Shown here: positions 23,786-62,761 of the stretch, in pieces
How positions within the stretch are numbered: the stretch's first letter is position 1
Layout of the letters: the number at the start of each line of letters is the position of its first letter
The notes under the pieces: model-generated
Database searches by the model: none
The model's input: only the letters and a program-made list of their open reading frames with translations
Told to the model about the DNA's origin: nothing
Origin: Geosiphon pyriformis uo1
Taxonomy: Eukaryota > Fungi > Glomeromycota
Assembly (NCBI GenBank): GCA_016748015.1
Contig: JAAOMT010000761.1
Span: forward strand, 252,139-316,138
DNA: 64,000 nucleotides
Reading direction: 5' to 3'
Program-made: the position numbers and the translations under genes

Positions 23786-23824
<39 letters not shown>

Positions 23825-34704: not shown

Positions 34705-34836
34705 TTACATGATCGAGCATTGACCAGTGCCACTGCCATCGTCTGGGTCACCAGTTGGTCCTTTAATTGAGCCGTTTCCAGGGGCGATAATTGAGAGTGG
34801 ATTGAATGAGGATTGATTGTTGGTTGTTGGTTGCAT
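34705..34836 (-). CDS. 43-aa CAAX-terminated peptide, putative lipopeptide pheromone precursor, copy 1
   Basis: ATG..TAA, MQPTTNNQSSFNPLSIIAPGNGSIKGPTGDPDDGSGTGQCSIM; differs from the other copies only at synonymous sites. Confidence 0.85.
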   Translation of the reverse strand: MQPTTNNQSSFNPLSIIAPGNGSIKGPTGDPDDGSGTGQCSIM

Positions 34837-34951
34837 TTTGTTTAAGTTATTTGATTTGATTTAATTTGATTTTGAGAATTCCGTATCTTTTTCTTTTCTT
34901 TAAGTTCTTTTGGTTGAATTGAATGAAAAGAAATTAGGAAGGCGCGATCAA

Positions 34952-35155
34952 TTTTATAGAAAAATATATGATTAGAAACAATATTAACTGAAACAGAATG
35001 TTAAAAAAGTCAAATTATTATTCCATTTAATCAGAAATCTGATAAACGCATTGTTAAGCTATACTAACAATATCCTAAAAACGGATCAGCTTTTAAAATT
35101 GATTATTTTAGTCGAAAAAGGCAAGATGTAGGTCATTGTTTTTTGCATTACAATA
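34952..35155 (-). promoter_or_regulatory. Promoter of peptide copy 1: TATAAAA (34952-34958) plus clustered AACAAT/ATTGTT sites
   Basis: TATA ~116-122 nt upstream of the ATG; AACAAT 34977-34982; inverted pair CATTGTTA 35049-35056 / TAACAAT 35065-35071; CATTGTT 35134-35140. Conserved in the other copies. Confidence 0.55.
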
Positions 35156-38084
35156 TTATAGAACGAATGCATGAATTTACAATGCCTTAAAAAGCTTTTG
35201 AGTTATACTTGTACAAAAAATACTTGTTTATTAATGGACAATGCTAAAAACTCTAAATTTCGATTATTCCAGTTCCTAATTTTTAACTGTATGTTAATGA
35301 GTATTACATGCGAGAAAATTTATGACCAGCATGCAAAATACTTTTGAATTCATAATTGTAAAAGGAACCTTTTTGGAATCTCTTCGGAAGTAAAATATGT
35401 TTAAAGATTTAGGTTTGCAATTCACTTAATGTGAAATAAAATAGTATTTTTGTTTCTTATTAAAAGTATCAATCTATAAACAAATGCTTTAAATTCAAAA
35501 TTGATTTGAATAGAAATGAAAATATTTTTTAAATTAAAATTAATTTATATTAGGTTCAGCTAAACGCCTGCTAATTTTATTCGTCTAATTTTAAAATAAA
35601 TTATAAGAATGTTTACATTACATGACTCACTTTCTATTTCGTACTCTGAAAAATTTTTGAATGGGAAACTAACTATCAACTTTTACTATTGCAAATTGAA
35701 AGAGTTAATGTTCAACAATTATTCATCTCCATTCGAGCACCATCTCGTTTTCATTCTTCAATTCTTAAGTCAAAAATAGGAAGACGGGACATTTTCAATT
35801 AGAACGAAAAATATTGATGTTTCCTGAGTTTCAAATTAGATATTGTTCTGCTAAAACTATAACTATTCTTTGAATTGTATAACCTGAAGCTTAGGTACTA
35901 ATAAAAAATATCAAATTAAGATTTAGATAATTTATTCATTTTTAATATCAGTTTTATTATCTCATGAAGAGTTTTTCACTTTATCCATTTGTTTTCTTTA
36001 ATATTTTTTGACAGTATTTTCTATATTCTGAAAATTTATTAATGATATTTTCTAATTAAATATTACTCTTTTCGTTAATAATCAAAGAATTCAGCATTCT
36101 TTATAAGTTTTTTTTTACCATTAATTAACATATTTTACTATTTAAACAATATTCTTATGATGAAAATATTGTTTATTTATGATTCAAATTTTATTTAATA
36201 TTTTTATGTGAAAATACTTTGGTTATTCCAAATTTTAATATTTATTATTATAAAGTCATCAATAAAATTTTAAACTTAGATTAAAATAAAAATTTAAATT
36301 CTAAATTTTACATCAAAAGTTGATGCTTGATAGCTAAAAGCACAATAAAGAAAACATGAAAATACAAGTGCAATATAAATTTTTGCTCAGAGCAGTATTA
36401 AAAAGATAATCTTTGACAATAGCAATATTTCTTAGAAGTATTTTTTCAATTGTTAGTATAATAAACTTTAGTATTTTAACTTCTATTATTAATTCATATT
36501 AAAAGTATAATTTAAAGGTGAAATTTATTTCAATTTTAAAAGAAATTTTTATAAAACTTATAACTTCAAATAGAGGATGGAATAAAATAATTTGAGTGTA
36601 GATAAACAGTTAATTTTAGTTTCAATGGATTTTGATCGGAGAAATATGGTTCAAGATTGGTTGATATATATTTATCGCAGGCTTTGGTTTCAGAATTTTC
36701 AAGGTACTTATCAGGTGAATAAATTAAATTTTTTTTATTGTAAATCGTTCAGCTTTTTATGCGAATTGTTTTCATTTCAAGATTTCTATGATCAAATAAT
36801 ATCTGTTACTTTTTTCTCTTTGATAGTATTGTCAGCGTTATTTATTATTAAATTAAATTTCTTTGGAAACTATGAACCATAGAAACTATTGAGAATTAAT
36901 TTAAACTATCTACCGATATTTCTAAATTTTCAAAAATGACTTTACATCTTGCAGTTGCAATGAAAAATAACCTGTTATTTTAAGATAACAATTTAATAGA
37001 ACTTTTTAATTTTCAATTGAGTCCAATATTCTTAATATCAAAGATTCTTCGTATCACAGCTATCATAATCAAAGACTATAAAATTCCATTATCAGATGCA
37101 CTAAAATAAAATTGCGAAAATTTGAAAGGTTATTACCTTCATAATCACTGCTAACAAAAGTATTTATAAACTTTTATTATATCTCTTCTTCTTATTAAAG
37201 TAGAATTTAACTAATAATAAAAGATATATTTTTTAATTTAATTTTGTCAGATTTTTAAGTCACTGAAATAATCAAGAATGAGAATTTTAATAGGAGTGAC
37301 AATTCAATAGATCAACAGATTTAAGAAAAAACTTGATATTTTAATTTCTAATAATTGTTACAAACCCAAATTAATTTTGAATTTTCTTTTTTATTATTAG
37401 CTCACATCAACTTAAATTTTCCAGCTTTAATACAAAAAGTAAAATATTAAACAATCAAGATAACCAAGATAATCAAACTATTTCTCATAACTAATTTCAC
37501 TGATTTTTCACACAATTGAGTATTGAATTTTTACAGGGTTCTTATCAAAGGCTCTTGTATCAAACCTTTAAAAAGTTTAAAAACCGATCTGAATTAGATT
37601 TAATAAATAACTTAATTCAGACGAAATGCTCGAATGTCTTGGGTTGTGTTAAGTAAGTAAAGATTGAACAGGTTCTTATTTGACTTTAAAGTATCACTTT
37701 GCTATTAAGAGATATAGTTTTAAAGATCCAAATAGCTTTATTTTACTTGAGCAAAAAAACTTTTTATGATTCTTGATTTAAAGCCTATCATTACCAAATT
37801 TACATATTAAGATAAAACTAACAAATTATATTACTCTAATGCTAATAAACAATTAATATTAAATAATTGTGAAATAGAAATATGCCGTATCCTTTAGTTG
37901 CGAGTAAATTCTATCGACTTTTGCTTTATTGCTGATTAATAAGAGCTAGATATCTATGTAAAGAGTCCAAGTTTGCATTATATTAACTTGAAGTATGTAA
38001 GCCAGAAGTGCCGACGATAATTTTCACACAATTTACTGGGATGGTTCGAAAAAGAGAACTTGCAATATGAATACTCTGCAACTT

Positions 38085-38216
38085 TTACATGATCGAGCAT
38101 TGACCAGTGCCACTACCATCATCTGGGTCACCAGTTGGTCCTTTAATTGAGCCGTTGCCAGGAGCGATGATTGAGAGTGGATTGAAAGAGGATTGATTGT
38201 TGGTTGTTGGTTGCAT
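38085..38216 (-). CDS. 43-aa CAAX-terminated peptide, putative lipopeptide pheromone precursor, copy 2
   Basis: Identical protein to copy 1; synonymous differences only. Confidence 0.85.
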   Translation of the reverse strand: MQPTTNNQSSFNPLSIIAPGNGSIKGPTGDPDDGSGTGQCSIM

Positions 38217-38403
38217 TTTGTTTAAGTTATTTGATTTGATTTAATTTGAATTTGAGAATTCAATTTCTTTTCCTTTTTTTTGGTTGGATTGAATGAAAAA
38301 AAGTTGGGAAGGCACGATCTATTTTATAGAAAAAGATATGATTAGAAACAATATTAACTGAAGCAGAATGTTAAAAAAGTCAAATTATTATTCCATTTAA
38401 TCA

Positions 38404-38535
38404 NNNNNNNNNNNNNNNNNNNNNNNNNNNNNNNNNNNNNNNNNNNNNNNNNNNNNNNNNNNNNNNNNNNNNNNNNNNNNNNNNNNNNNNNNNNNNNNNN
38501 NNNNNNNNNNNNNNNNNNNNNNNNNNNNNNNNNNN
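38404..38535. other. Assembly gap (132 N)
   Basis: Run of N in the promoter region of peptide copy 2. Confidence 1.
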
Positions 38536-41500
38536 AATTTTTAATTTCCTATTCTATTTGAATAGTTGCTAATTAGAGTGCAAATTGAAACCTGTTAAAG
38601 GCGAAAATAATTTAGGTTCGATATTTTTTCAAAAAAGTTTTCATGTTTTAATAATTCTTTTATTTTCAAATATAAGAAACTTTCAAGTAGAATGAACAGT
38701 ATAGATGTTATGCCAGTTTATGAGTAGAAATTTTTTGCTAAAAAATAAATATTAAAATTCTACATAACGCTATCTATAATCTGAAGCTTAAATAATATTA
38801 ATTTTTTTAAAACAATACCAAAATAAGTGTTGAATTTTTAATATATTCATTCAGAAAATTTATTTAAAGCATTATAAGTTTTACGAGTCAGGTTTATTTC
38901 ATTTTTTGAGTCAGATAATGGTATTTTTAATGGAATATTATTCTTTCAGCATTATTGACCAGAAGCTTTTACTGTGTAAATTATTTTGTGATTGATTAAG
39001 AGGACCAACAACTTTTACTATTCAAATAAAGTTTTGCTTATGACTTCATTTGGTAAAAAAAGGGTCTTCCGATTATAATCAAAAATAACCAATATTGTGA
39101 AAAGCAAGAACAATTCATTTGATCTAAAAAACTCTTTTCTTGAAAACCTTTAATAACTAAAGACACCTAGGAGTGGCTCAATCAAAGACTTACCCATGGC
39201 AACGACGCAGGGAGTGTTCGATCATTATTACTTATATTTTGGTGTAAATCTTAATCAGCTTTATATGCAATTTTTTTTATAAGCTTCAATAACTTTTGAA
39301 ACTTGAAATTTTGATTTTTTTATATTTCTCAAACTTTCCATTTAATCTCTAAATCATATTATCTCACGCAATTAAATCTGAAATAGAACGATGACCCGCA
39401 TATGATAAGTTTCAAAACCTGATTTAATTGATCCAATTTATAAAATATGAAATAACATAAGTATATTTAAAATTAATCAAATTTCATAAAATGAACTGAT
39501 TAATCGAATGAATATAACCAATATTATTAAAACCAAAATTAATCACTGAAATATTGAATTTTTTAAGATAATCAATAAAAGCAATAGTTTTAAGAATATC
39601 AATGACAAATAAGAAAGATCTTAATTCAATTACGAAAAAACCATGTTTATATGTCTTGAACTAATGAAATGCTGAATTTTTGTGGAAATTAAATAAGTTT
39701 TTACATTGAATTTAGCCAATAATTAAAATGGATTCCAATCAAAATTAGCATCGGAAAATGGCAATATAAAAAAAGATGTGGGCTGTAGAATTTTCCTAAA
39801 TTTTCGGACTTTCACTCAGAAAATAGAAGTTTCAATTAAAACAAATTGGTTTAGTTAAAATATATATATAATTTATTTAATGTATTTGTAAATATTTTAT
39901 AAATTATAAAAGTAATAATAATACTTAAAATTGTAGGCTAATTTAACAAAAAATAATTGAAAATTATTCAATAAAATAAAAAAAGCAAAATTTAATACAT
40001 AAATATGATAATTTGGTAAAAAAATTAAACAATTAAAAAAATATAATGAGTGATCAAGATTTTGTATAAATAAAAATATTTAAAATTTCTGTTAGTTTAA
40101 TGCTATTTTTATTTAAAACTATTCTATTGCAAATTGAAGACACAAATGAATAAATAGCAAAAAAGCAGTAAAGTAAATAAAATAACACATCAAATTTTAT
40201 ATCGAAATTATTCAAATAGAAAATCAATTTTAAAACATCAATTTTAATTCAAAAAAAATAATGCTTATTTATCAAAATTAAATGAATATTTTTATATTTA
40301 AGTAATTTACTAACAGATATTTAATTATTTTCAGATTAATTTTGGCAAAATAAATATAGAAAAAATGAAAAATATTTATTAATATAAAATAAACTATTAT
40401 TTAATATAAAAATAACTTTTTAAATAATTATTTTTACAATTTTAAAAAGTTAAATATATATCAAAAAATTAATAATCAATTAAAATTAGTTCAACAAATT
40501 TTATTCAACAATTAAATCATTGATCAAATTAACAATTAAGTTAAAAACTACTTTAAAAACAAAATGACCATTATTGGTATATAAAAATCAAAAAATTAAA
40601 TTCTGGTAAAATAGATTAATTATTGCATAAATTTGTTTTATTTTTTCAAGATTTTATTTACATAAAAGATGATGAATTTTTAATTTTTAAATATTTATAT
40701 ACATATATATTGTATATAATGAAAATAGGTAAACTTCAAAAATGAAAAACCTTTGATTTCAAAAAAAAATTTATAAAATAATAACAACTTAAATTTTGTT
40801 TATTATAATAATTATATTGTATTAATTTAAAAATATATAAATAAAAGAAATGACTTTGATAGACATTTTTGATTAAAAGTTCATTATAATATCAAATTTG
40901 ATAATTTTATTAATTTAAAATATTTCAAAAATAATTTAACAAAATACTTTCAGAATAATTTGATTAATAAACGAATAATTATATAAAACTTTAACTTAAT
41001 TAATAAAAAATTTTGTTTAACATTTTTTAAATTATGAAAACCAATAATTAATCAAAAATACAATATTGATTAAATATCAAGTTTATTAACTTTATTAATA
41101 ACAATTGGAAAAATGGCCTTAAAACTAAAATTTTTAAAATATATAAATAGTTTATTATTGTTACAAAAATAAGACATTTATTTCTTGAACAGCATTTTTT
41201 AGAATTCAATAAATCCTATTGTTATTCAAAAACAATTTTTTTTACTTTTCAAGCTAATTTTAACAAATACAAATAAAAAAAGATATTGACTGGTTCAAGG
41301 AAAAAAGAGATAATTTCTAAAGCTGTAAGAAGTTTTCTTTATATATTTAACAAAAAAATCAGGTCAACATTTAGGTCAATAACTTAGTATATGTTGCAAC
41401 TTAAAATTTAATTCAAACTCTTGTACAAATTTCACTTTTCTTTTTTGAAATTAACTTAAATCCCTATTTGTTGAAACTCTTATCTGGAAATTTTTCTTCT

Positions 41501-43430
41501 AGGATAAAATCTCAATGTAATATATTTTATAAATTTTGATTTATATTTGATTATAAGTTTGGTTTTCTAAATTTAATTCAACACCCTTATAACAGTAACG
41601 CTATAAAGACTTTTAAAATTTCCTACAAATATCTTGATAGACCTCAGATTTGTGATTCAAATCAAAAGAATTTTTAGCGCATTAAAAGTCCAAAGGCAAA
41701 AATTGCTTTTTTTCACTAAAATAAAACTTTTATTATTATTATTCTCTTTCAATTCTTCATATTTTTAAATTTTTAGCTGCCATTTTTTATTCAGGAAGTT
41801 GCCTTTTTCTATATAGCCGATTAATACTTCCTGGCAGAAATATTTTATTCTGTTTAATACATCCTCTCTTCATTTCTAAAGCATAAATGGCCTCCTTCAA
41901 AATTTTCACATACGAATAGCCTCCAATTAGTTTCTCATTTCGAAATTGCGATATATAATTTCTTAAGATCCAGGAGTGTTTTGCCCTAAATGTACAAGTT
42001 TGTTGGGAAATTTTCACTCTTAAATTTTTATTTGCAAACGAGCAATAAACAAAGCTTGTTTTCGAATCAAAGGATTTGACCAAAATTTCTAGTCAAGTCG
42101 AAAAATCTATGCCAGGAACAGGTTTTTTAAGATTCAAATCTAATGATTCAATTATGGTACCACAACTATGTACAACATTTGCGATCGCCCCAAGTACTCT
42201 TTTGCGGGCGCAGTGATTAAAGGGAAATTTTTTCTTTAAAAAACTTTTTCAATGCATAATTTTGTTATCTTATTAATCGAAAATTTGGCTACTTTAAAAT
42301 TTGATAATGATATAATCTGAGTAATTCGTTGATTTTTTTGGCTCTCCATAAGATACTTTCTTTTTAATAATATCCTTGTAAAAAAAACCTGTCAGAGAAT
42401 GATTTGATCCAAATCTTAGGTCTGAATTTTTTTCCTTACTCAAAAAGCAGTATAGGAGTGTGCCTATAAAAAAATGCATTGCAAAGCAAAAAAGAAGCCA
42501 GCCCTTCCGAATAGTCGACTGAACCCCCCAAAAAATTATTTTCCATTGCAAATATAGATTTCCTAAAATTAACCAATTTAATTGGATTCTTCTAACTATA
42601 AAAAGCGCTTTTCTTTATGACCCACAATTGTCTAATTCCAAAGTTTTTACGTCTCCATAAGGTTCTAGAGATCTGCAAGTCAACTTCTTTAAGAGAAATA
42701 ACCCTGATGGCATTTTGCAGAACTTAATATTTGTATCACAAGGTTTTTCCATGGGTTTCGGTGAATCTAACTTCCGTTAGCCGATTCAATAAAAATTACT
42801 TAGCTCGCCGCAATTGAGGAGGTTTTGCCTATCAGCCCAGGAGATATCCCTCTAGGCTTCCGGTAATTTCCGGGGATAATTTCTCATATAGTTTGCAGCA
42901 ATAACTTAATGGTTATGAGTATTCAATATCCTTGTTCTCTTGATGATGAATAGCAAAATAAAATTGCCAGGCCTGGGTTGACATGAATCAAGATTTAATT
43001 ACATCTAGCAATTCAACTTGTAGAAGTTAAAAATCCAAATTTTTGAATTTGACTCATTGAACTCAACTGTTCATTTTATTAATTCGAAGTATCTCCTTGC
43101 ACTTTATTAAATTAATTGTTTGGTATGTTTCACCAATAACAATACTTGATTGCCGATGCACAGGTACTGCAAATGATATATGTTTACCAATTATTTCCGC
43201 CAAACGTCACACGGCAAATTTCCCAATATAGATCACTGGCAATCACATATCATGGGTTTTTGTCAGTTTTTGGGGTCTGATATCAATTTAGCGTATTAAA
43301 TTAATCGAAACTTTATAATTGCCAATAATTTTTTATGTAAAAAATACCTCTCTTACTAAAACATTTCAGAAACCGTTTGAAGTATTCCTCTTTTAGGTTC
43401 ATTTTTCAGTCAAGGATAAAAATAAGAAAC

Positions 43431-44577
43431 ATGCCAAATAAAAGGAAACCTAAGTCACATGTGAATCGAATACGGGAAAATTTTTTAAATGAATATACTT
43501 TATCGAGAAGATCTCAAAAGTTTGTGGATGTCAAAGAAGTTCAAACACCCACCGTCGGATATAAAAGCTTCAATTGCCCAGAAAATATCCCTCTCGAAAT
43601 TCTCACTAATATTTGTACATACCTGACGCCAAGTGATCTCAAGGGTCTAAGACTAGTATGCAAATTCTTTAATGAAGTTCTCGGATCACCGGTTTATTCA
43701 ATTTCACAACAAATTTGGGAAAATTCGAGGCTTGCTTACTGCCCAGACCAACAGATGCCACCTCCTGAAGATATGTCTGAACAGGCATATGAAAACATTG
43801 TTCTCTATGAAAATGGATGTCAATTATGTGGCAACAAAGATGAAACTCCATCAATTTTCTGGGTGGTAAAAATACGTTGTTGCACAAAGTGTCTACAAAA
43901 CAATATTTTGAGGTATACCTCTTTGCCTTTATGTGCCTTTGTCACCTTAAACTTGTATTAAGTTTCTCTAAATTTTTTTTCCAAGTAAGGAACAGCTTCA
44001 AATAAAATGGCAAGTTCCAGATGAATTAATCGAAGTCATTGAACCGGTCACTCAACGTGATTTGTATGAGGATGGGCTTTCTTACTATTGGAAATCACAG
44101 GTTGCTCTAAAAATTAACCAATATATTCGACTTTTTCCCACGAAAAAAGAGACCTGGCTTCAACACGAAAAGACTCGTATTCACAAAATCAAGCAAGAAA
44201 CTTTTCGACGAGAACAATTTGATGACCATCAAATTCAGCACAAAATAAATTCATTGAAAAGTCACCTGGAGTCATTGGTTACAGAATTTTTTAAATCGAT
44301 TACTTCTCCTCAACCAAGGGGTCTTCGAAAACAAGCTGTACAAAGCTGTCCTTGTTATAAAAAGCTATTGTCCGATATCGAATCACTTCCATTTATCCCG
44401 AAAGAGTGGGGGAGCTTTAAAGTTAAACTGGAACTCGAAATTAAAGAAAACCTCAAAAAACATTATAATTTCAATGGTTATACAAGTTCTAATGATAGCA
44501 CTATTGCTGATGATGAAGATCATCAAAGTCTTGACGACAGGTGTGCGAATGTCCTCCACTTAGGAGTTATCACTTGA
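43431..44577 (+). CDS. F-box domain protein, ~357 aa, 2 exons (43431-43912, 43986-44577)
   Basis: F-box IPLEILTNICTYLTPSDLKGLRLVCKFF; QQIWENSR...PPPEDMSE..Y; CQLC...CCTKC Cys cluster; an in-frame GT..AG intron joins the two ORFs. Confidence 0.88.
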
Positions 44578-47390
44578 GAAGCAAAAGACTTTTTATAAAG
44601 GCAAAGAAATATTAATAAGGCTCTTTGCTTCATAAAAAAATTTCTAATTACAAACATTTTTTCTTCATCCTCTTTAATAAGACTAGAGCGTTTTGCTTCG
44701 ATAGTTTATATTAAAGAATGCTGCTTTTATATATAAGAGCAATTCTGTTTCGACTTCGAGTGAAACTCATATTAATTAATGTGGGCAATTGCCCGATATA
44801 TGAGGTTAAATAAGTTGCATTATAAACCTATATTTTAATCTTAAACTTTTAAAGAAATATAAAAATATTTTTGAAAAGGATTTTGCTTAAATAAGCTGAC
44901 CTAAAATTTTTACAGAATGACTAGTGGAAATCAACTAAGAATAAATTTAGAGGAAATCTATTCACAAGTTAGAGGCTAGCCCAAGATATTACTAGAATTT
45001 AATGATTTAAAATTTTGTCTTTTAAAAATGTTTTTTGAAATCTTGAATTGTGCTTGGTCTCATTATCCGATGTGCCCCCTTATAATATCTATACTACACT
45101 AAAACTGGTTTTAAAGCAAATTTATTTATTTATTTTTATTACGTGACATTTTAACTAATATATACGAAAAAGATTCCACTCACTGAAGACTAACGTGGCA
45201 GCTAAGAAATTTTGTAATTTCAACCGGAAAATTGCTGAGCTTGTTGGTTGTAACTAGGAAATTGTCGGGAATATACTCAAATGTGAGGAGAACGTCCCTG
45301 AATTTCCGCCGAGGCAGTAAAAAGGTCGACTTCCTCTTCTTAACACTCCAGAATATGCCCGGCGAAATAAAGCAGTCATTGCGGGTTACAATTATTAATT
45401 TTCTATATATATTTAACTGGCTAAAAACAAAAATATCCGTAGTTTTTCGATCATTGCCCAATTCTTATGGTCTTTTTGCTTTGATCTTTTTAGCCAACAG
45501 AAGGCCATATGAAAATCTACATGCGACTCCAAAACGGTAAACTTACAACCATTCACGTGAGCATGGAAATGACATTTATTCCCCTCCTTTCGTAAACTAT
45601 CCTAAAACTATTTAAAAGTGTCACTTTCTACAGGATAGATAGGCTTAAAAATGAATTAATATAATTTAAAATGTTCTCCATTTCAAAAATTATGTGTAAA
45701 TATGGTCACTTCATTATATTATGTTATCTTTTTGATCACTATTTTAATTAATTAATATGAATCTTTCAATTAATCATCTTTTCAGTAAATAATTCACCTT
45801 TTAAATTAATTAATTTATATCATTGATATATTTTTTACTTACATTATGGATAATGAAATCTTAATTTAATTTAGATGTTTTATTATAACTCATTAATTGT
45901 ATGTATATAATTTTTTATCTTATCAGCTTACTTTATTATTATATTATTGTCATTGTTGTTATTTTTATTTTTTAATTACATTATTGTTATATTTATTTAA
46001 ATTATATTATTTGCATTAATTTTAGAACATTATATATTACATTTCAATTTATTGATATTTATATATACAACTCTTTTTTATTAACAAAATTCTTTGGTTG
46101 AACAATATTAATTATTTTTTATTTTATTAATATTTAGTAAATAATTAAAAAATTTAAATTAAACAAAATTTTCTAAATAAATTAACGAGATAACTAATAA
46201 AAAAAATTTTTAATAAATAAAATATTAAATTTCTGTGTCAAAATATTTGTATTAATTTGGTAAAAAAGAATCATTTGGCAATAAACTTTTTATAATCGTT
46301 TACAGTTCAAGTTTAAGTTTTTAGAAAAATAAAATAAATTCATAATTGCTTAGCAAGTTAAAATTGTACGTCGTGTTTTTAGGTTGGCAAAAATAAAAAA
46401 TTTTTAATTTTCTTATTCAATATTTTATTATAATTGTTAATATTGAATATTTTCGTATTAAATGAGTTTTAATTTGGTTTATCACTATATCTTACAAAAT
46501 TCATCTGAATTACAATATTCTATTAAAATTTACAAAGATATATCATATTTAAATTATATTATATTTATATAATAAATTTCTTTTCTTTTTAAATAAAGAT
46601 TAATGTTTTCATTTCTCGCTTTGTTTTTTCTACTCTCATAACACTTTATATATTAATGTCAAAAAAAATTTCTAATTTTTTTTTGACGGTAAAATTTTGA
46701 AATTAGAGATATTAATTGAAAAAACTTAAATGAGTTATGTTATCAAGGTTTGAATTATCTAAAAAAATAGAGAAAAATAGCTCATAATATATTTTTAAAA
46801 TACTTAAATTAAGTTATATGAATTATAAGCATTCATAATTCAAATTAAAAATTTTATTAGCAGTAAAAACTTCAGATTTTTTATTTAGGTTTCTATTTTT
46901 TTTGGGGATTCCAAATATCTAAGGCTCAATTTTTGCGTTGAATAATTTAATTTTTCAAGTTCACCAAGAATATACCTTAAAAGCACCTGAGTAGCAGTAT
47001 TTTATATATGATAGAAAACCACATTTTTTTTTTGAGTAAAAAAGTTCTACAGTTCTTGAGTTAAAGCTTTCCTTTATTAAGTTTAAATGCTAGAAGCATT
47101 TTATTTAAACTTTGGTAAACCAATGACATTTTATAAAAGTAATGCTATAATCCTAATGCACAATTAATATTAAGAAATAGTGAAAGAGATATATGCGATA
47201 TCATTTCATTATAAATAATCCTATTGACTTTTGCATTACTATTGATTATTAATAGCTTGATAACTATGTAAAGAGTCCAAATTTGCATTATATTAACTTG
47301 AAGTATATAATTCAGAAGTGCTGACGATAATTTTTCACACATATTATTGGGATAAAAAAGAGAATCTTCAATATAAATACTCGGCGAATT

Positions 47391-47522
47391 TTACATGATA
47401 GAGCATTGACCAGTGCCACTGCCATCGTCTGGGTCACCAGTTGGTCCTTTAATCGAGCCGTTGCCAGGGGCAATTATTGAAAGTGGATTGAATGAGGATT
47501 GATTGTTGGTTGTTGGTTGCAT
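47391..47522 (-). CDS. 43-aa CAAX-terminated peptide, putative lipopeptide pheromone precursor, copy 3
   Basis: Identical protein; private synonymous codons at L14, I16, S23, S41. Confidence 0.85.
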   Translation of the reverse strand: MQPTTNNQSSFNPLSIIAPGNGSIKGPTGDPDDGSGTGQCSIM

Positions 47523-49729
47523 TTTGTTTAAGTTATTTGATTTGATTTGAATTTGAAAATTCAGTTTCTTTTCCTTTTCCTCAAGTTATTTTGGTTGGAT
47601 TGAATGAAAAGAAATTGGGAAGGCACGACCAGTTTTATAAAAAAATGTGATTCGAAACAATACTAATTAAAGCAGAATATTAAACAAGTCAAATTCGATC
47701 ATAAATTTGACAGATGCATTGTTAAGCTATGCTAAAAATATCCTAAAAACGGTTTTTTTTATCATTTTAGTCGAAAAAGGCAATATTTGGGTCATTGTTC
47801 TTTGCACTACAATATTATAGAACAAATGCATGAATTTACAATGTCGTAAAAAGGCTTTTGAGTTATAGTTGTACAAATAATACTTGTTTATTCATGGACA
47901 ATGCTAAAAACTCTAAATTTAGATTGTTCCAGTTTTGATGTTTAACACTATGTTAACGCAAGAAAATTTATGACTACCATGCAAAATACCTTTGAATTCA
48001 AGATTGCAAATAGGGATCTTTTTGGAATTTCTTTAAAAGTGAAATGTGTTTAAAAGATTTAGGTTTGGGATTCAGGGAATGTGAAATGAAATTGCATTTT
48101 TGTTTTCTTAGTAAATGCTTTTAAATTCAGAATTGTTTTGGTGAGAAATAAAAGTATTTTTGAATTAAAGTTTAGAATAAATTATAAAGATTTTTTCATT
48201 AAATGCATTTCGTATTCAGACAGTTTTAATTTTAATAAATTTTTACCTACAACATTAAATATCAACTCTTATTCTCCAAATTTAAACCGGCCAAAGGATA
48301 AAATAATTTGACCCATTTAAAATAATTTGATCTTTTCTCAAAGAATTTATTTTCAACAATTCTTCATCTCCATTCTGCATTTCTTTAAGTCGAAAATAGG
48401 AAGATAGGGAAATCTTAATTATAACGAACAATACAGATATTATGCGAGTTTCGGAGCGGATATTGTTCTGCTTGAACTATAAATATTCTTTAAATTTTGT
48501 AATCTGAAGTTTAAATACTAATAAAAAAATGTTGAATTAACGTTTAGATAATTCATTCATAATAATGTCAGTTTTATTTTCTCATTGTGTTTAACCATGT
48601 AGAGATTTACATCTGGGCATTTATTTATGTTAAAAATTTTTACAAATTTAAGAAAAATAATCTCTGATTAAATTATTCAGCATTCTTTATAAGTTTTTGT
48701 TGATTAATTAGCATCTTTTACTATTTAAACAATAATTACATTGCATTTTTCAAATTTAATTTTCAATTTTTATGTAAAACCACTTTGGTCATTCCAAATT
48801 CTAATACTTATTGTCATAAAGTCGTCAATAAATTTTAACCTTAGATTACAATCAAATATAAATTTTAAATTTTACATCAAAAGTTTTATGCTTAATAGCT
48901 AAAAGTACAAAAAAAACATAAAAATACAATGAAATACAGCTTTTTTTTAAAGCAGTATTAAAAGAATAATTTTTCACAAAAGGAATTTTTTTTATAGGCA
49001 TTTTTTCATAAAAAACTTCTGTATTTTAACTTCTATAATTAATTCATATTGAAAGTATAAATTAGAGATTAGATATTTTCAATGTTAAAATTTATTTTTA
49101 AGAAAAACTTATAACTTCAAATAAAAAAATTTAATAGAATAATTTGAGCGTAAATAAAACATTTAATATGAATTTCACTGAATTTTGATAGGAGAAATAT
49201 GATTCAAAGATTGGTATATATATATATATCGCAAGCTTTTAATCTCTTTGATTTCAAAAATTTAATAATTTCAAGGTAAATATCAGGTTTGAGTTGAGTT
49301 AGTAAAGATTGAACAGGTTCATATTTGACTTTCAAGTTTCACTTTGATATTAAGAGAGATATTTTTAAAGCTCCAAATAGCTTTATTTTACTTGAGCAAA
49401 AAAACTTTTTATGATTCTTGATTTAAAGCCTATCATTACCAAATTTACATATTAAGATAAAACTAACAAATTATATTACTCTAATGCTAATAAACAATTA
49501 ATATTAAATAATTGTGAAATAGAAATATGTCGTATCCTTTAGTTGCGAGTAAATTCTATCGACTTTTGCTTTATTGCTGATTAATAAGAGCTAGATATCT
49601 ATGTAAAGAGTCCAAGTTTGCATTATATTAACTTGAAGTATGTAAGCCAGAAGTGCCGACGATAATTTTCACACAATTTACTGGGATGGTTCGAAAAAGA
49701 GAACTTGCAATATGAATACTCTGCAACTT

Positions 49730-49861
49730 TTACATGATCGAGCATTGACCAGTGCCGCTACCATCATCTGGGTCACCAGTTGGTCCTTTAATTGAGCCGT
49801 TGCCAGGAGCGATGATTGAGAGTGGATTGAAAGAGGATTGATTGTTGGTTGTTGGTTGCAT
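49730..49861 (-). CDS. 43-aa CAAX-terminated peptide, putative lipopeptide pheromone precursor, copy 4
   Basis: Identical protein; one synonymous change (S35 AGC) relative to copy 2. Confidence 0.85.
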   Translation of the reverse strand: MQPTTNNQSSFNPLSIIAPGNGSIKGPTGDPDDGSGTGQCSIM

Positions 49862-52800
49862 TTTGTTTAAGTTATTTGATTTGATTTAATTTGAATTTGA
49901 GAATTCAATTTCTTTTCCTTTTTTTTGGTTGGATTGAATGAAAAAAAGTTGGGAAGGCACGATCAATTTTATAGAAAAAGATGTGATAAGAAACAATATC
50001 AATTCCCTTTGATCATAAATTTGATAAACGCATTGTTAAGCTATACTAACAATGTCCTAAAAACGGATCAGCTTTTAAAATTGATTATTTTTGTCGAAAA
50101 AGGCAAGATGTAGGCATTGTTCTTTGCTCTACAATATGATAGTACGGAATCATGAATTTTCAATGCCGTAAACAGACTTTCAAATGATTATTCTTCAAAA
50201 CGTGCTATAGTTGTACAAAGAATACTTGTTGATTCACGGACAATTTTAAAAACTCTAAATTCGATTATTCCAGTTCTGACGCTTAAGTCTATCCTAGTGG
50301 GTATTATAGAGAGTAAATTTATCACTGGCATGCAAAATATCTTTGAATTTAAGATTGTAAATAAATATCTTTTCTAAATCTTTTCCAAAACAAAGAAACT
50401 TTAGAGATTGGGAATCAAATAAATCTTTTGTTTTGTTAACACAGCTATCAATCTATAAACAAGTGCACTTCAATTTCAAAATTAAAACTTTTCATTAGTC
50501 TTTTAATTTCCTAGCCTTCAAAAGTCTTATTTGAATACGTGTTAATTCTTAAAGTTGCAATTTAAATCTGCCAAATAGCGAAACAATCTAACCGAATTTA
50601 AACAATTTGATATATTTTCAAAAAAGATTCATGTTTAAAAATTCTTTATCTTCTCATTCATAAGTTGGACATAAGAAAATGCAAAATCTTCAATGAGAAC
50701 CATAGATATTAGAATTTCATATGAGACTATGTATAACTTGGATCTTAAATATCATAAAATCATTTAAAACGACAGCAAATTAAAATCTCGGGTCTTTACT
50801 CATCCATTCAGAAAACTCATTCAATCAGATTTAGTTACCTTTATTATATATCCTCTTTAATTATGAACAGCTTTAGAATTCTCTTTGACAATCTTTTGGG
50901 TAGTTTCTACCTCTGAAAATTTGAAAGTAGTATTTTCTGATTGACTAGTTTCTTTTACATAATATTTAAGAATTCAGCAAGCCTTAATATTTTGGAAACA
51001 TCAGAAATACAACGGTCAACAATACCCAATTCTTATTTGATTTTCGTATGTGGGAATGGTTCAATTAGAGAACTTATCTATTGCAGAGGTATCATATTAA
51101 CACTTAAATTATGAATTGCGAATATCGGTATTTCATAAAGTTTGTGAATCTCAAGTGTATTAATAGGGGCTTTTATTCAAGAACTATTTTTTGGACTTTA
51201 TAAATTCTAAACATCGAAAACTATAAATACCATACTTTCAAATGTTAAAATAAGTCATTTTTTGGTTTACTCAATGCAGTAGCCAAATATTTTTTTCAGG
51301 TTATTTTTTAAATGGTACTGTTATAAAAGATTTATTTTAAATCTCTATCAACTTTTCATGCTAAAAAATTTGAAATTGTCTCCAGAACATAAACTAACTT
51401 AGAAATTCAAATAGTGTTTTTTTTGTAAGTCGAAATTATTTTATTAAATCTTTAACTAGTTTACTATTTTAACTTCTTAATTGGGAATTTCTAACTTTTT
51501 CATACCTTTGAATCATACAGTATAATTCCATGTATTAAATCTGAAATAGAGAAAATAAACCTAAACCTTTTAATTTTGTTACCATTTTATAATTTTTCAA
51601 CCATGATTCTTTAGCATATTTTTAACTAACTTTGGAGCCTAATTTACAAATAACTCAAAATTGGTTAATTAGTCATTATAATCAAATATTTAAAAAATTA
51701 CTTAATATTCAAATTTAAAAGTAAGATTAGTTTTATTTTGACTTTCAACATATTTCGTCTAAATTAGTTAATTCAATTCAACTTTTAAATATATGCTACT
51801 ATTAAATATATTTGACAGTAATCAGCTGCTATAAAATGAACTTAAATTAATGAAATCAGCACAAATTGCTCATTTGTTATATATACTGTTAAAAAATTAG
51901 AGTCAATAAATATAAATTAAGATAAAAATTAAATTATCAAAAAGATTAATTTATATAAAAATTTTATTAAAATTACATTTAATAATCATGAGTTTGATAA
52001 TTTCACAAAAAATTTTGTTTTTATGTTGGCATTTCAAATAAATTATTTACAGCCAAAAATTAAAAGCCTTAAGTTAAATTATTTTTCAATAATAAGTATT
52101 ATATAAAAATTTCAAATAATAATTCGGATTTTCAAAAATTCTCTTATTTGAGCTAAAAGTAATAAAAAAAAATGAAATCCTTTATTTTAATTTTTAATTA
52201 TATCGATGCTAAAAACTTTAATTCAAAGTCAAAATTTATTAAGTTGCATTATTAATTATTCAATTTTTTTTAAAAAACAAGAAGAAATATTTATTAAAAA
52301 GCAATGTGACTATATAAATTCATTGGTTGGAAAAGAATAATATTTGTAACTTATTCAAAACAAAAATAATATGAATAAACAACAATTTTAAAAAATGTTT
52401 AAATGATATTATATAATAATAATTTTTTCGAAGTCTTGGGTTTTCTTAATATTATTAAAGACATCTTATTCTCAACCATGAAAAAATTAAAAGTTATTCT
52501 GTTGATATTGTTATTAACTTTATTACAAAGCAAAGATAAAATCACATACAAAAATCAATATATTTTGGATATTTGTAAAAAAAAAGGGTAAGAAAGTTAC
52601 CAAAAACAATTAAAAAGATTTTGACTGAAAAAAAAGATTGAAAAAACATGATGATGCATCAAATAGCTTAACAATTAAGATCCGTGTTGCTATTTTTCAT
52701 TTTAAAGTGCATATACTTTGTCAAAGTCTTTATGAGTGGCGTTTGTGGTAAACTCACATCGAGATAAGGAGGTCTATTGATAGGTTGAATTATCTCAAAT

Positions 52801-55800: not shown

Positions 55801-56997
55801 ATGACTTAACTCAAATTAGGCATTCAAAGGAAGAAAAGTTCGGTTTTTAGAAACTATTTCATGATTTATTGTGTGTGAATTATAAAACGCCAATCATAAA
55901 TTTTTTATTCTCTTTAGCTCAAAACATGAGATAACTCAGGATGTGACGAGTTTGTATGTGAAAAATTCTTCAGTAAAACACTTTCAAAAAAAAAATTTCC
56001 CCTAAATGTTTCAACCTTGTCTTATTTTAAAAAGGGCAGGTAAAACTGAAATTCATCTTTTACAATATAAAGGATTCATCGCCAAATTAGGAACCTCCCT
56101 TTGTTCAAAATATTCGTCAAAGTTTTTCCGTTATATCAATTAAATATTAAAAAACCCCCCACCTAAAAAAAAATGAACTATAAGTAGAAATATCCCTTGT
56201 GAGAAAGTCGTCTACTCCACTAAAAAGTCTTTGCCTATGATTTAATTCAATCTAAACTAATAATTAAATTATTAAATTATTAAAAGCACATGAGACATGA
56301 CAAATCAGACCCTTTGCAGATATCTCCGCGTCAAAAACCTGAGATCTTTTATTCTTTAGTTTATTTTTAAGAGAAATAAAATCAAAAAACTACATTTGAA
56401 CCGTTTATATTGAGTATATTCAATACCTTCGAAACAAAGTGAACTTTCAAAACTCTTTTTCATTCAATATTGATTATAGTTAAAATCAATGATTGTTAAA
56501 TTTTAACCATTTTTAATATGTATATATTGCTCCTCTGTCTTAAGTTTCACAATTATGCAAGGATTTAAAATTTATGCGTCATTATGAAAAATTAATTCTA
56601 GTATTCTATATTTGGACAAAAAAGTCTACCCTTCCGCAATTTTGCATACATAAAACAGGAGATTTAACTTCATTATTCTTTGTCTCCACATTAATCTCTA
56701 GGTATCTCACATGAAAATGATATTCAGTAAATACTTTTACTTTGCATTTTGAAATTAAATACATTTATACATTTTCAACTTTGCTATAAATCATGTGACT
56801 ACTTTTTATTTAGATTTTGATGATAGATAATCACCAATGAAAAGGTTATCTTTTGATTAATAAAAAAAAATTAAAAATAATCCTGCTTTTAGTTAAAATT
56901 TTAACCTTTAATATTATTCGGCTACTCTGATATTTACAGATATTTCACATTGTCTTTTTCTCAATTTTAAAAATAGTTAATCATTTTTAAGCTTCCT

Positions 56998-58540
56998 TTA
57001 CCAAGAAACATTCTGATTCTGTCCATATTCTTCATTCAAACGAAAACCTCCTGGATGTGAATTCTTCCCATGTTGATTGTATTCATAAGGTAACTGTGAG
57101 TATTGCTGGTTATTATAATATTGTAGTTGCTGTTGTGGAATTTGCGTCGGAGGTAGAGCTGAGAACGAATGCTCAGATGGTATGTTGATAGAAGATGAAT
57201 ACATTGTTGGAATTTGATGATGTAAAAGTGTAGCAATAGTTTGAGGTGAAGATGGCACTGGAAAAATTACTGGAGATGAACCAAAAGGAGGTGAAGCATA
57301 AGGCGAAGTGGATCCTGAAGTAATAAATGACTGCTGTGGCGGTGGATAAGGCGAATTAAATTTTTCATTAGATGATATAATTGGGATCGTTCCAGCATAT
57401 GAAGGTGGATTAGGATCGGGTGGAATTGGTAGAGGTCGACCTTTGTTATAAGTATAAGATGTTGATGAATCTGGTTCACCAAGTTCGTAAGTGCTAGTTG
57501 ACGGATTCAAAAAATGCTTTGGATTGGTGACTAACCCAGGCTTAGAATGATTTGTTAACAAAGCAGAGACTCCTTCATTATTCTCGTGGACCAAAACCTC
57601 TTCCTCAAATTCAGCATACTCTGCTACTGATTCATTAGCATCTTCAAGTGATTTTTCATGTTCCTCTTTGCGTTTTTGTTCCAAGAATGCCTCGCCACTC
57701 ATTTCAGGTTTATGTGAAATCTTTTCGGCATTTTTGAATCGTGAATGAATCAATCGTTGTCCCGCGATAAATGCGATAATAGATACGAACAAAAATGACA
57801 TTGCGGCCACCATCATCCAAAAAGCGTTCGATAGTGAAGCATTGAAATTCTGATTTTTTTTGATTGCTTTTACCGCGATCACAAATAAAATCAAATCGAC
57901 GAGAAATGCAAACATTGTTGTGAGCAATGCTGCTATGGCACATTTGACAATAATTGTTAGGAAGTTTCCTTGTCGTTTGGGGCGAAAATGTCCAATTGTT
58001 CCCATTATTGTTATTAAAAGTGCCAGGCCGAGAGCTAGAAAACAAATTTATTTTCTCTATCAAATCAAAATTCAAGTCAGAGAAAGTTTGAATGCGTCAA
58101 AGAAACCATACCTATAATGTGAGTAACAGCCAAGTATCCTAGTCCAGCACCTATTGTTTCACCAAGTATTCCAACATTAAACTTTTGCAATTCTGGGGGA
58201 AGGTCATTTGAATCTTTACATGAGCAAAGAAATTTTAGTCACTTCGAAAAACCCGGGATTCTTGTATTTGAAAGACGGATAAGGTTAAGATTTTAAAACG
58301 TAACTTACCTATTTTAAAACCGGGTTTTGCAGCCGAGCATGTAACCTGTCCTTTAACTTTCGCACACCAACCCCATAAACCAACACGAAAATAATCAACC
58401 AGGCTTTCAGATTCAGAATTTACGTTAATGAAGTATATACCGGGGGTAAGCGGTACACTAATGTTCACTAAGAATAAACATAGCAAAGCGCTAAATGCGA
58501 GAACTGTTCCAGGTGTTGCCTCACGGCCCAAATAAGGCAT
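56998..58540 (-). CDS. PalI/Rim9/SUR7-family multi-pass membrane protein with a long Pro/Ser/Gln-rich cytosolic tail, 3 exons
   Basis: N-terminal TPGTVLAFSALLCLFLVNISVP; claudin-like GLWGWC..(8)..C motif; three further TM helices (THIIALGLALLITIMG, AIAALLTTMFAFLVDLILF, NAFWMMVAAMSFLFVSIIAF); PPSY motif in the tail; two in-frame GT..AG introns. Confidence 0.87.
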
Positions 58541-61500
58541 TCTTTTAAATGTCCACTATATGATTTGAAATTAAGAGACTACAAAAAATTCAAGCCAACT
58601 AGATCTTTTGTAAATAAGTTATAAAATTTCAGATATGAATTTCTTTTGCGTTTTAGAGTATGAGGATTTAAAATATTGAGAATATGTACATGAACTTCGT
58701 GGGAAGCAGTATTTATAAGAGTGATGCAGGATTCACAGTGCACATGGAAAATGTCACGAAGTTAAATTCCTATGCGTGGCGGATGGTATCTTATGTTTCT
58801 ATTTTGAAAGAATAAGAATTCAAGTCCCCCGATTTGTTGCGTGTTTGGTGTTTCATCAGGAGAATATTAAATTGGCTTAATCAATAAACACAAAGCCATT
58901 CTATTATATGTCCTGTTATTGATGATGATTCAGCATCACAGACAGTTTAGCTTCAATAAATCCTTCTATTCAAGACGATAAAGGTATGACATGTCCTGCA
59001 GGAAATCACTTAATTTAGTGAAGTGCCAAGTTTTACAGCAGATCATATATACGCCTTGTCCCATTGTTTTTTGAAAACTTGGCTCAAAAAGAAAATTATT
59101 TATCGATTCATTCAAAAAGCGAAATCCTAATTTTCAACTGATTCAAATTTTTTCCCCAAGAAAAATAAAAGTGTGACTCCTTTGGTTTTTTTATATTAAA
59201 TCAAATTTTATAAATGTACTTTAACTAAAGAAAGGATAAGACTTTGCGAAAGAAAAGCAAGATTTAGTATTGAACGGTACAAAAAAGAGATAGTTAAAAA
59301 GTTTCAGTTAAATTTCTTATAACAAAAAAGAAATTACTATAATTTGGAAATTTAATTACGATTATATAATTGAGCTTCTCAAAGCAAAGACGATACAAAC
59401 GGGGGGGGGGGGGGGGAAGAAGTAAATTTATGATAGCATAATTCGCTGTAAAGTATTGATAATTAAAGAGCTTAAAAGAACTATTATACATGTGCAAAAA
59501 TTTCATCTCACATGTTAATCATGTTTAAACATCAGTTTTAGATTTCAATTGATCATGGCATTTTTCAATAAGAATATAAAATTTGAGGAGAAAATATCTC
59601 CTCTTGTTATTAAACTAATTTTTATTTATAGCTTTAGAATTCTAGATAATACCATGAATATGATTTCGATTCAAAAATTGACGCCAAGAGCACTCTTGGC
59701 TTGTCTGTATTCAATATTATTGAAATAGGTTATTCATTTATAAGCCACATATCTTGATTATTTTTTTCATGGTGAGGGCTCCTTGTCATTGTCTTGATAG
59801 TATATCGTAAAACTGACAAGACCACTTGACAGAATTCGATTAAAGTTTTCCCACCAATATGACTTGTGAGGCTTTACACTGCATACGAGGCGGTGTAATT
59901 GAATCATTACGAAAGTAAAACTGACATGTGACTAGGATAAACATTTAATCCAGAAATCATCAAGATTATCAAGTGATGATAACGAAATTATAAATATATT
60001 TTCTCTTATTGGAAAAAGCAAATCATCCGAAATCTGGCTTGCAGATATTTCATTATACATTTTTATGAATTAGTTTTGGGAAAAACGAAATTTTTTTTAT
60101 TATGACTTGATCCCACGCTGAATCATTGTCTTAAGTTAAAAATGGGGCTAAAAAAATAAAACTCTTTTATGACTGAGAGCCTATTCAAAGTATTGTCTGT
60201 TACAAACAAATGATAAATAAGTTGTAAACCAGATAAAAGAATGTAGATCGGTTATTAAATATCCCAATTCAAAAAACTCGATGAATATTAAAATGAATGA
60301 TTTGAAATTAAAACAGCAGTTAACAGTATTTAATTGTTTTCACTATTTAAATTTCAATTTGCTTATAAATAGTTGCTGATGAATATTTCCCGGATTATAA
60401 AAAATTTCTGAAAAGATTCTTAAGCATTATAATATTACAATCTTCTAACTATTTTTAGAGGATGAGAATATGAACAATGTTGTTGTGTCTGTATAATAAA
60501 TAATTTTTATATTAAAATTGATAATTAAGTATCAAAAAACAAATACTTTTTTGGCATAAGATAAATAATTAATATATATTTGTTAAATATAAATTGTAAT
60601 AAGATTAATTTATTTTGTACATTGCTTTTTATAGTTTTTTTGTATTTAAATATAGACATTCATTATACTTATCTAAAATGTTGAACTTAACTATGTTATT
60701 TACTATTATTAAGAAAAATTTAAAAATAAATATCATAATATATATATACCTTATTAATTGTGTACATTTTTTTATCTAACGTATCGTATAAAATGGTTTA
60801 TCAATTTAATTTGTATCCTCAAATAAAATTATTATTGTTATGACAAAGCAAGAAAGATCAATAAAACCACATAGCAGATAAGTAAATAAGTAATTGAGAA
60901 CTAAATATTAACCGGTGTTGATCTACTTGTGGATCAAATAACCAGTCCAACTCTTCCTTATATATCTGAATCCCAATTCCAAATTTTGTTACTAGCTGAT
61001 TTGATCAGTCAATTTTCTAGAATATTCCAGAATACTCAATGGTTAAAATTGGTATAGTATATTTAAATAAATATAATTACATATTTTAATTGTAATTTTC
61101 CCAAAAACATATTTACATGTTGAAATAAATCGAAAATTAAATTAAATTTTTTAAGTTATTACGACATTTTTAATATTAAAAACTACAAATAAAATATTTT
61201 ATTTATATGTTTGATTTAAAAATAGAAATATAATTATGTAATTATGCTTAAATTAGATTTTTATATATAATTTTAAACAAAAGAAATTTAAAATCTAAGA
61301 TTTAATAAATGATCCAACACAATTATTATTATTTGCTGAAGTTTTTCTATTAAAGAACTCAAAGAATATAATAAAGCTGACTACTGAAACTGATAATGCT
61401 TTAAATGAATTCTTGAATGGAAACATTAAAGATATAAAAATTTATTTTGGTATTGTCTTAAAAGATTTAATATTATTTAAGCTGCAGGTTATAAATAACG

Positions 61501-62335
61501 TTATGTAGAATTCCAAGTATACTTATTTTTTGAAGAAAAATGTATGCATAAAATCTACACTGCTCATTCTACTTGAAAGTTTCCTGTTTTCTTATGTTTG
61601 ACCTAATAATAAAAACATCTTTTTTAGAAAAAAATCAAATTATCTAAATTGGGTTAATTTATTTCGCCCTTTAACAGGTTTTATTGTGCACCACTAATTA
61701 GCAACAATTCAATAAGACGTTTAAAAAATAGGAATTAAATATATACAAATACGAAATATTTAAAATACAAAGCAGGCATCTTTACAATTAATACAGGAGG
61801 GGTCCGCAAAATTATCTAAAACCTAGATTAATGAAGAGCCTAAATTGGGTTATGTAAATCGAATAATTCGAGCTTTTTTAAAATAAATTTTTCCTATGCA
61901 CACTTAGCAAAAATTCATTAATGCCTGATAATATTAAATTCTATTTCTTACTAACTACTTGATTTCAAAATTTCCTTCAGATTGATTTTGAAATTGAAAA
62001 GCATTCGTTTATGATTGATACTTATTCTAAAAAACGAAAAATCATTTTATCACAATTTTTAAATTATATTTTGCTTTCGAAAAGGTTTAAAAAAGATATC
62101 CATTTATAATCATGAATTCAAAGGTATTTTCCGTCCTAGCGATAAAGTTTCTTGCATGTATTACTTAGCGTTAAACAGCAGGAACTGGAATAATCAAAAT
62201 TTAGAGTTTTTAATATTGTCTGTGAGTAAATATGTATTCATTGTACAACTATAACACGTTTTACAGAATACCCTTTAAAAAGCCTGTTTACGGTATTGTA
62301 AATTCATGCATCCGCTATGTAATATATTGCATTGC

Positions 62336-62515
62336 AAAGAACAATGACCCACCTTTTGCCTTTTTAGACTAATAATCTGATATGTTTTTAGGGCATTGTT
62401 AGTATTGCTTTAACAATGCATCTATTAAATTTATGATTAAATGAAATAATATTTTGACTTTTTTAACATTCTGCTTCAGTTAATATTGTTTCTTATCACA
62501 TCTTTTTCTATAAAA
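62336..62515 (+). promoter_or_regulatory. Promoter of peptide copy 5
   Basis: AAAGAACAATG 62336-62346; inverted GCATTGTTA 62393-62401 / TAACAATGC 62411-62419; ATTGTT ~62485-62490; TATAAAA 62509-62515. Confidence 0.55.
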
Positions 62516-62629
62516 TTGATCGTGCCCTTACAATTTCTTTCATTTAATCCAACCAGAAGAAGTACGAAAAAAGAAAAAGAAATTGAGTTCTCAAATTCAA
62601 ATTAAACCAAATCAAATAACTTAAACAAA

Positions 62630-62761
62630 ATGCAACCAACAACCAACAATCAATCCTCATTCAATCCGCTCTCAATCATTGCTCCTGGCAACGGCTCAAT
62701 TAAAGGACCAACCGGTGACCCAGACGATGGCAGTGGCACTGGTCAATGCTCGATCATGTAA
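62630..62761 (+). CDS. 43-aa CAAX-terminated peptide, putative lipopeptide pheromone precursor, copy 5
   Basis: Identical protein; private synonymous codons at P13 and T28; 48% GC (64/132) in a strongly AT-rich background. Confidence 0.85.
   Translation: MQPTTNNQSSFNPLSIIAPGNGSIKGPTGDPDDGSGTGQCSIM

Follow-up and report, generated by a model that had tools for sequence, protein, structure and literature searches.

Geosiphon pyriformis (Glomeromycotina, Archaeosporales) encodes a large family of short peptides with a CAAX end, and the best-supported reading of these genes is as a candidate family of a-factor-type pheromone precursors outside the Dikarya, a reading that is well supported at the level of sequence. 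The genes considered here lie in the terminal 64 kb of a contig of 316 kb (C578), a stretch referred to throughout as the window, where a first-pass annotation had pointed to five 132-nt open reading frames (ORFs) as an a-factor-type candidate in a non-Dikarya fungus. The positions and strands of the five ORFs were confirmed (Table 1), as was their one common 43-residue translation with its CSIM end, and the proposal agrees with what was found beyond the window: selection on the peptide, a CAAX end in the relatives from Ambispora, an intact STE3 gene together with genes for Ste24, ICMT and prenyltransferase, and a gap in the literature.

Copy number, selection and relatives of the peptide genes

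CAAX-like ends are found in 6 of the 262 ATG-initiated ORFs of 25-100 amino acids (aa) in the window, and the peptide family accounts for five of those six. The sole Cys of the translation is at position -4 in each of the five, and the ORFs differ in composition from their surroundings (46-48% G+C, versus 26-28% in the flanks and 25.8% in the whole window). The five-ORF observation is real, and far beyond chance. Inspection of the 43-aa sequence also bears out the lack of a signal peptide: the N-terminus is polar and the longest hydrophobic run is 6 residues. The peptide as a whole is polar and rich in Gly, Pro and Asp, and is probably disordered.

What had been taken for a five-copy family has at least 33 members. 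A six-frame search of the whole genome returned 37 matches, made up of 33 intact 43-codon ORFs and about four decayed copies; all intact copies end in CSIM (33/33), and the protein is identical in 24 of them. The nine variant copies carry their changes mostly in the N-terminal half, and the segment from I24 to M43 is unchanged in 31/33. The copies are clustered on C729 (11), C578 (the five of the window), C551 and C622, with pairs or singletons on eight further contigs. The true copy number may exceed 33, given that two of the clusters abut contig ends and that window positions 61130-64000 (= C578:313268-316138, the contig end) share 98% identity with C729:947674-950802; the assembly probably breaks inside these arrays, which makes our count a lower bound. 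Three of the decayed copies (C551:39722, C700:140157 and C777:605211) lack the start codon or the N-terminal half and retain the C-terminal motif and the Cys box, a pattern that indicates birth-and-death turnover of the family.

The intact copies are far from uniform at the nucleotide level, with 29 distinct sequences among the 33. Mean pairwise differences amount to 0.38 for synonymous and 0.017 for non-synonymous changes; a Nei-Gojobori calculation on 31 copies gave proportions of synonymous (pS) and non-synonymous (pN) differences of 0.38 versus 0.008, a ratio of 0.02, and third codon positions account for 32 of the 40 variable sites. Outside the ORF the similarity of the copies tapers off at ragged boundaries (median -127 to +21 relative to the ORF), leaving the ORF as the conserved core. 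Gene conversion or recent transposition is disfavored, since either would have wiped out the synonymous differences. These patterns argue for very strong purifying selection on the peptide, and for copies that are old coding genes rather than repeat debris; that they are real, selected CAAX-peptide genes we hold to be very nearly certain.

The genes had been described as unannotated, which is true only in part: GenBank models exist for some of the copies (G9A89_006322 and G9A89_006324 on this contig), in which false 3' introns swap the CAAX-stop for unrelated tails. Some other public models fuse the peptide ORF with neighboring genes (355-792 aa). Because the GenBank models carry these invented 3' introns, the CAAX end is invisible in public proteomes. 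We rejected the C-terminal extensions as artefacts, as the tails vary from copy to copy and the CAAX-stop is invariant. Also rejected was the possibility that the ORF represents the last exon of a larger gene, given the conservation of Met1, of an A at -3 and of the TATA box, Ambispora included.

The relatives that were found come from a second family of the Archaeosporales, from the species Ambispora leptoticha and A. gerdemannii. As in Geosiphon, the gene models of these species contain a false 3' intron and have lost the CAAX-stop, and the CAAX end was read from the DNA. A. leptoticha has four copies within ~10 kb, three ending in CVIM and one in CIIW; A. gerdemannii has two on separate contigs, ending in CVIM and CVIV. 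Kept across the alignment of Geosiphon and Ambispora are the length (39-43 aa), the single Cys, Met1, Asn21 and a G-P-T-x-D motif. It had been noted that orthologs without the terminal CAAX would speak against a lipopeptide precursor; in Ambispora the CAAX end persists with other residues in it, and because the box residues change while Cys-x-x-x-stop holds, selection appears to act on the prenylation rule. Two of the A. leptoticha copies differ with pS 0.60 versus pN 0.02. The two A. gerdemannii copies (L045 8307-8435 and L052 10001-10129; pN 0.135) have most of their differences in the ~12 residues that precede the Cys, and may represent two peptide specificities in one genome. The remaining matches of the protein searches were low-complexity repeats or fused gene models, and the ESM Atlas returned nothing for the peptide. 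The sole match of a metagenome scan was discarded as a false positive, having 58% G+C and the motif within a long ORF without CAAX.

A putative route from precursor to receptor, and its rivals

Srikant et al. have described a sieve for a-factor precursors that asks for a CAAX end, a length of <100 aa and an Asn located 5-20 residues ahead of the Cys, for more than one copy specifying the same peptide, and for conservation in related species. The Geosiphon family shows every one of these features, with Asn21, invariant in the alignment with Ambispora, sitting 19 residues before Cys40. It is because the family passes each step of this published sieve that we read its members as candidate pheromone precursors.

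On this reading the 43-aa precursor would be made in the cytosol without a signal peptide, and a farnesyltransferase would farnesylate Cys40 of the CSIM box; the last three residues would then be removed, for which Ste24 is present in the genome, and the ICMT/Ste14 homolog would methyl-esterify the new C-terminal Cys. The polar, conserved N-terminal extension would be cut off, likeliest after Asn21, which is invariant, if the Axl1 site of a-factor (N21/Y22) is taken as a guide. The mature product would be a 19-residue acidic, Gly/Pro-rich lipopeptide, GSIKGPTGDPDDGSGTGQC, with a farnesyl group and a methyl ester on its last Cys, which an ATP-binding cassette (ABC) transporter would export and the single STE3-type receptor would sense in mating or in a mating-like cell-to-cell recognition. 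The first-pass annotation had placed the cut after K25 or after DD; neither mature form found support, and the invariant Asn21 fits the yeast Axl1-type rule better. We infer every biochemical step of this scheme, together with the place of the cut, the means of export, the pairing with STE3 and the role in the life of the fungus. We consider it rather probable that the genes, which have no introns, encode precursors of a farnesylated, carboxymethylated a-factor-type peptide signal sensed by STE3, by the full mechanism as set out here.

Much of the machinery that such a route would call on can be found in the genome. There is one STE3-family receptor locus (C642:334886-335808, 148 and 75 bits), a gene of three exons with GT-AG introns, of which exons 1 and 2, analyzed separately, cover positions 1-292 of the Pfam STE3 model. 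ICMT/Ste14, Ste24 and three loci for prenyltransferase beta-subunits are present, as are many ABC_membrane transporter loci, several of them with two membrane domains, an assignment made at the level of domains. Of the processing and sensing genes looked for, those for STE3, Ste24, ICMT and the prenyltransferase beta-subunit were thus found; to an Rce1-like protein and the M16 middle domain we return below. No STE2 was found in the genome search, a result that is uninformative on absence, as the same search matched in no control genome. A complex prediction in which exons 1 and 2 of STE3 were entered as separate chains with peptide residues 11-40 scored 0.00, which is no verdict, neither for nor against binding; the fold of the partner was uncertain.

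Several observations weigh against the pheromone reading. A family of at least 33 copies is far above any described family of pheromone genes, and one peptide type with one receptor per genome would mean self-signaling, unless other nuclei or isolates differ. The contig with STE3 (C642) carries no peptide copy, the copies being on C729, C578, C551, C622, C657, C700 and six others. The part presumed to be mature is no better conserved between the genera than the N-terminal half. Outside Geosiphon and Ambispora there were no relatives in a profile search of 1.84 billion proteins or in word-index searches, the scope of which did not extend to the unannotated short ORFs of other genomes of arbuscular mycorrhizal fungi (AMF). 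Pfam, its pheromone families included, gave no match at E values up to 10 for four family members; this missing match does not bear on the mechanism, as the class is defined by features, not by homology. An Rce1-like protein (PF02517) and the M16 middle domain of Axl1/Ste23 (PF16187) were undetected in whole-genome six-frame searches, from which introns may hide them; for a-factor, Ste24 alone suffices to remove the AAX residues (PMC2148179).

Part of this could be accommodated if the genes specify an exported farnesylated lipopeptide with a role other than mating by way of the STE3 of the same fungus, be it a self or quorum signal in hyphal fusion, a signal to symbiotic partners, or a surface-active lipopeptide, with gene dosage providing for bulk production. 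At least 33 copies with identical products suggest a need for large amounts, and both the pairing of a single peptide type with a single receptor in one genome and the absence of linkage between the peptide genes and STE3 are in keeping with such a role. No receptor class other than STE3 is known for such peptides, however, and STE3 is intact in this genome, and the variation between the A. gerdemannii copies falls largely in the presumed mature part, a pattern typical of recognition peptides; the family is moreover common to Geosiphon, with its cyanobacterial symbiosis, and Ambispora, which lives in symbiosis with plants, and so is not specific to one partner. We consider this explanation unlikely. 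That the peptide is prenylated but retained in the cell as a small membrane-anchored factor, never trimmed or exported, is also unlikely, and in our estimate slightly more so. A CAAX end predicts prenylation and not export, the candidate exporter loci are known by their ABC_membrane domain only, and the good conservation of the N-terminal half between genera is unexpected for a pro-region that is discarded; set against this are the multicopy layout with identical products, which is typical of pheromone precursors, and the polar, Gly/Pro/Asp-rich and probably disordered sequence. We know of no class of 40-residue, domain-less intracellular CAAX peptides.

That the genes encode precursors of a ribosomal peptide product modified in some other way, comparable to the multicopy MSDIN precursors of Amanita and with the Cys box incidental, seems very improbable. 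Such precursors would likewise be short, signal-less and multicopy, and several Pro residues could serve as protease sites, yet the products here are identical and have no hypervariable core, no genes for modifying enzymes adjoin the copies (the neighbors are F-box, SUR7 and NmrA-like genes), and the retention of Cys-x-x-x-stop through changes of residue between genera argues that the CAAX rule itself is selected. Hardly credible at all is a non-functional ORF that travels with a repeat or transposable element or is homogenized by gene conversion. It could account for the high copy number, the clusters near contig ends and the decayed copies, but not for a synonymous divergence of 38% beside an invariant protein, for repeat boundaries that are ragged and centered on the ORF, or for the conservation of the family in Ambispora, a genus of another fungal family; a transposable element as such was rejected on its ragged homology boundaries and high synonymous divergence. 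The a-factor-type precursor family remains the reading that we prefer.

Upstream regions, assembly gap and neighboring genes

The best-conserved elements upstream of the copies are TATAAAA at -112 to -122, ATTGTT ~24 nt before the TATAAAA, and an A-rich leader with A at -3; from these elements each copy looks like a small transcription unit of its own (Table 1). A 21-nt leader before the ATG, at first described as invariant, is identical in 5/5 copies of the window and exact in just 11/33 genome-wide. The Ambispora promoters, otherwise diverged, keep TATAAA at -114 to -138.

Upstream of the 33 copies, cores of the SOX/MATA-HMG type (AACAAT/ATTGTT) number 3.4 per 300 nt versus 0.69 window-wide, an enrichment of about five times, and the same cores are found at 2-5 per 400 nt versus ~0.8 upstream of the Ambispora copies. 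HMG-box factors drive pheromone genes in Schizosaccharomyces pombe, Ustilago and Cryptococcus. The distribution of the cores suggests control of the peptide genes by an HMG-box factor, a suggestion to be taken as a lead only, as the copies are related by descent.

Table 1. Peptide genes, their upstream regions and the assembly gap, in window positions
Feature	Position	Strand	Remarks
Copy 1, 43-codon CAAX peptide gene with CSIM-stop end	34705..34836	-	From translation; protein identical in 24 genome copies
Promoter and leader, copy 1	34837..35136	-	TATAAAA 34952-34958 (-122); AACAAT/ATTGTT cores at -146, -219 and -235
Copy 2, peptide gene	38085..38216	-	From translation; ATG at 38216; 97.8% identity to copy 4 over 714 nt
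Leader and proximal promoter, copy 2	38217..38403	-	TATAAAA 38322-38328; truncated by assembly gap
Assembly gap (run of N)	38404..38535		In the upstream region of copy 2; in no ORF
Copy 3, peptide gene	47391..47522	-	From translation
Promoter and leader, copy 3	47523..47822	-	TATAAAA 47633-47639
Copy 4, peptide gene	49730..49861	-	From translation
Promoter and leader, copy 4	49862..50161	-	TATAAAA 49967-49973
Promoter and leader, copy 5	62330..62629	+	TATAAAA 62509-62515; near-palindrome ATTGTTA-N-TAACAAT 62395-62417
Copy 5, peptide gene	62630..62761	+	From translation; 1.2 kb from contig end; 2.9-kb surroundings 98% identical to C729:947674-950802

The assembly gap begins at -188 relative to the start codon of copy 2 and is spanned by no reading frame; the ORF, leader and TATA box of this copy are all intact despite it. 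The near side of the gap aligns with the other copies at -197..-1 and the far side with copy 5 at -968..-918, and because the flanks match the repeat unit at these two places, the two sides belong to one unit in the same order and orientation. Judged from this alignment, the real missing length is probably ~0.7 kb and not 132 nt.

Apart from the genes named here, the window is gene-poor between 29 and 64 kb. The neighbors comprise a two-exon gene for a SUR7/PalI-family membrane protein (56998-58540, minus strand), an F-box gene (43377-45540, plus strand), two NmrA-like NAD(P)-binding paralogs (15630-16256, minus strand, and 23815-24483, plus strand) and a class 3 lipase fragment (6298-6687, minus strand). 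Elsewhere in the genome, an intronless gene for a 604-aa homeodomain protein (C657:364670-366484, minus strand) lies ~21 kb from two peptide copies of an N7S variant.

Significance and comparison with known systems

No sexual cycle has been observed in AMF or their relatives, although these fungi have kept meiosis genes, a putative MAT locus, the STE3 receptor and the STE6 exporter. STE3 and STE6 were found in AMF (Rhizophagus) by Halary et al. (2013; PMC3834313), who could find no pheromone gene and called for new approaches, and no upregulation of pheromone genes was seen by Mateus et al. (2020). STE3-like receptors are reported to be the one family of G protein-coupled receptors that is general to fungi. 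Our literature search found no paper linking Glomeromycotina, pheromone and farnesyl/CAAX, and none after 2013 describing a pheromone gene. Because public gene models hide the CAAX end, homology surveys of annotated proteomes will keep missing the family.

The peptides described here are the best candidate so far for the ligand missing from the STE3 of these supposedly asexual fungi, and having a candidate ligand makes the open question of an AMF pheromone experimentally approachable. The wider proposal, that the peptides are the glomeromycotan STE3 ligands, and that signaling by farnesyl-peptide and STE3 predates the Dikarya and still operates in AMF-type fungi never seen mating, is one that we advance tentatively, as a real possibility rather than as the expected outcome. 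If true, this would be the first peptide pheromone family outside the Dikarya, and the origin of the a-factor/STE3 system would lie deeper in fungal evolution.

The C-terminus of prelamin A, CSIM, is a farnesyltransferase substrate whose processing depends on ZMPSTE24, the Ste24 ortholog. The Geosiphon peptides share with it this tetrapeptide, and Ste24 is also present in Geosiphon; prelamin A differs in being a large structural protein of the nucleus and not a secreted peptide. The basidiomycete precursors (Ustilago Mfa1/2, Cryptococcus MFa/MFalpha and Agaricomycete Phb) are similar in size, of ~35-60 aa, and have a CAAX end. Basidiomycete pheromones have mature parts rich in Gly, Ser, Asp and Pro, are encoded by several clustered gene copies, and signal through STE3-type receptors. 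Their genes, however, are allelic and stand beside the receptor in the pheromone/receptor (P/R) locus of the mating type, whereas in Geosiphon the receptor gene and the peptide genes are on separate contigs, there is no known allelic series, and the Pfam pheromone models are unmatched.

The M-factor of S. pombe (mfm1-3) offers the example of several genes specifying one identical farnesylated and methylated peptide, with an N-terminal extension of 30-32 residues (PMC2134810); its production needs homologs of Ste14 and Ste6 (PMC2134810). The three M-factor genes differ from those of Geosiphon in having introns, a nonamer product and expression limited to one mating type.

With MFA1 and MFA2 of Saccharomyces cerevisiae, which encode the Ste3 ligand, the Geosiphon genes have in common that there is more than one of them and that each encodes a short signal-less precursor, extended at its N-terminus and with its only Cys in a CAAX box at the other end; shared too is an Asn at position 21, where Axl1 cuts a-factor (N21/Y22, PMC2148179). 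They differ in number (two genes versus at least 33), in the length of the mature part (12 residues versus a presumed 19) and in its character, which is hydrophobic in a-factor versus acidic and hydrophilic in Geosiphon; there is no detectable homology at the level of families, and processing in Geosiphon is something that we infer. Set in the same register as the a-factor precursor (yeast sequence from PMC2134810), the Geosiphon peptide matches it at Asn21, I24-K25-G26 and D30-P31, or 6 of 13 positions (residues 21-33); in a comparison made post hoc, 9 of 20,000 shuffles reach such a match in any register. The match may reflect deep homology or chance; if the wider proposal is true, the shared Asn21, IKG and DP would even mean that a-factor precursors and the Geosiphon genes go back to a common ancestral gene.

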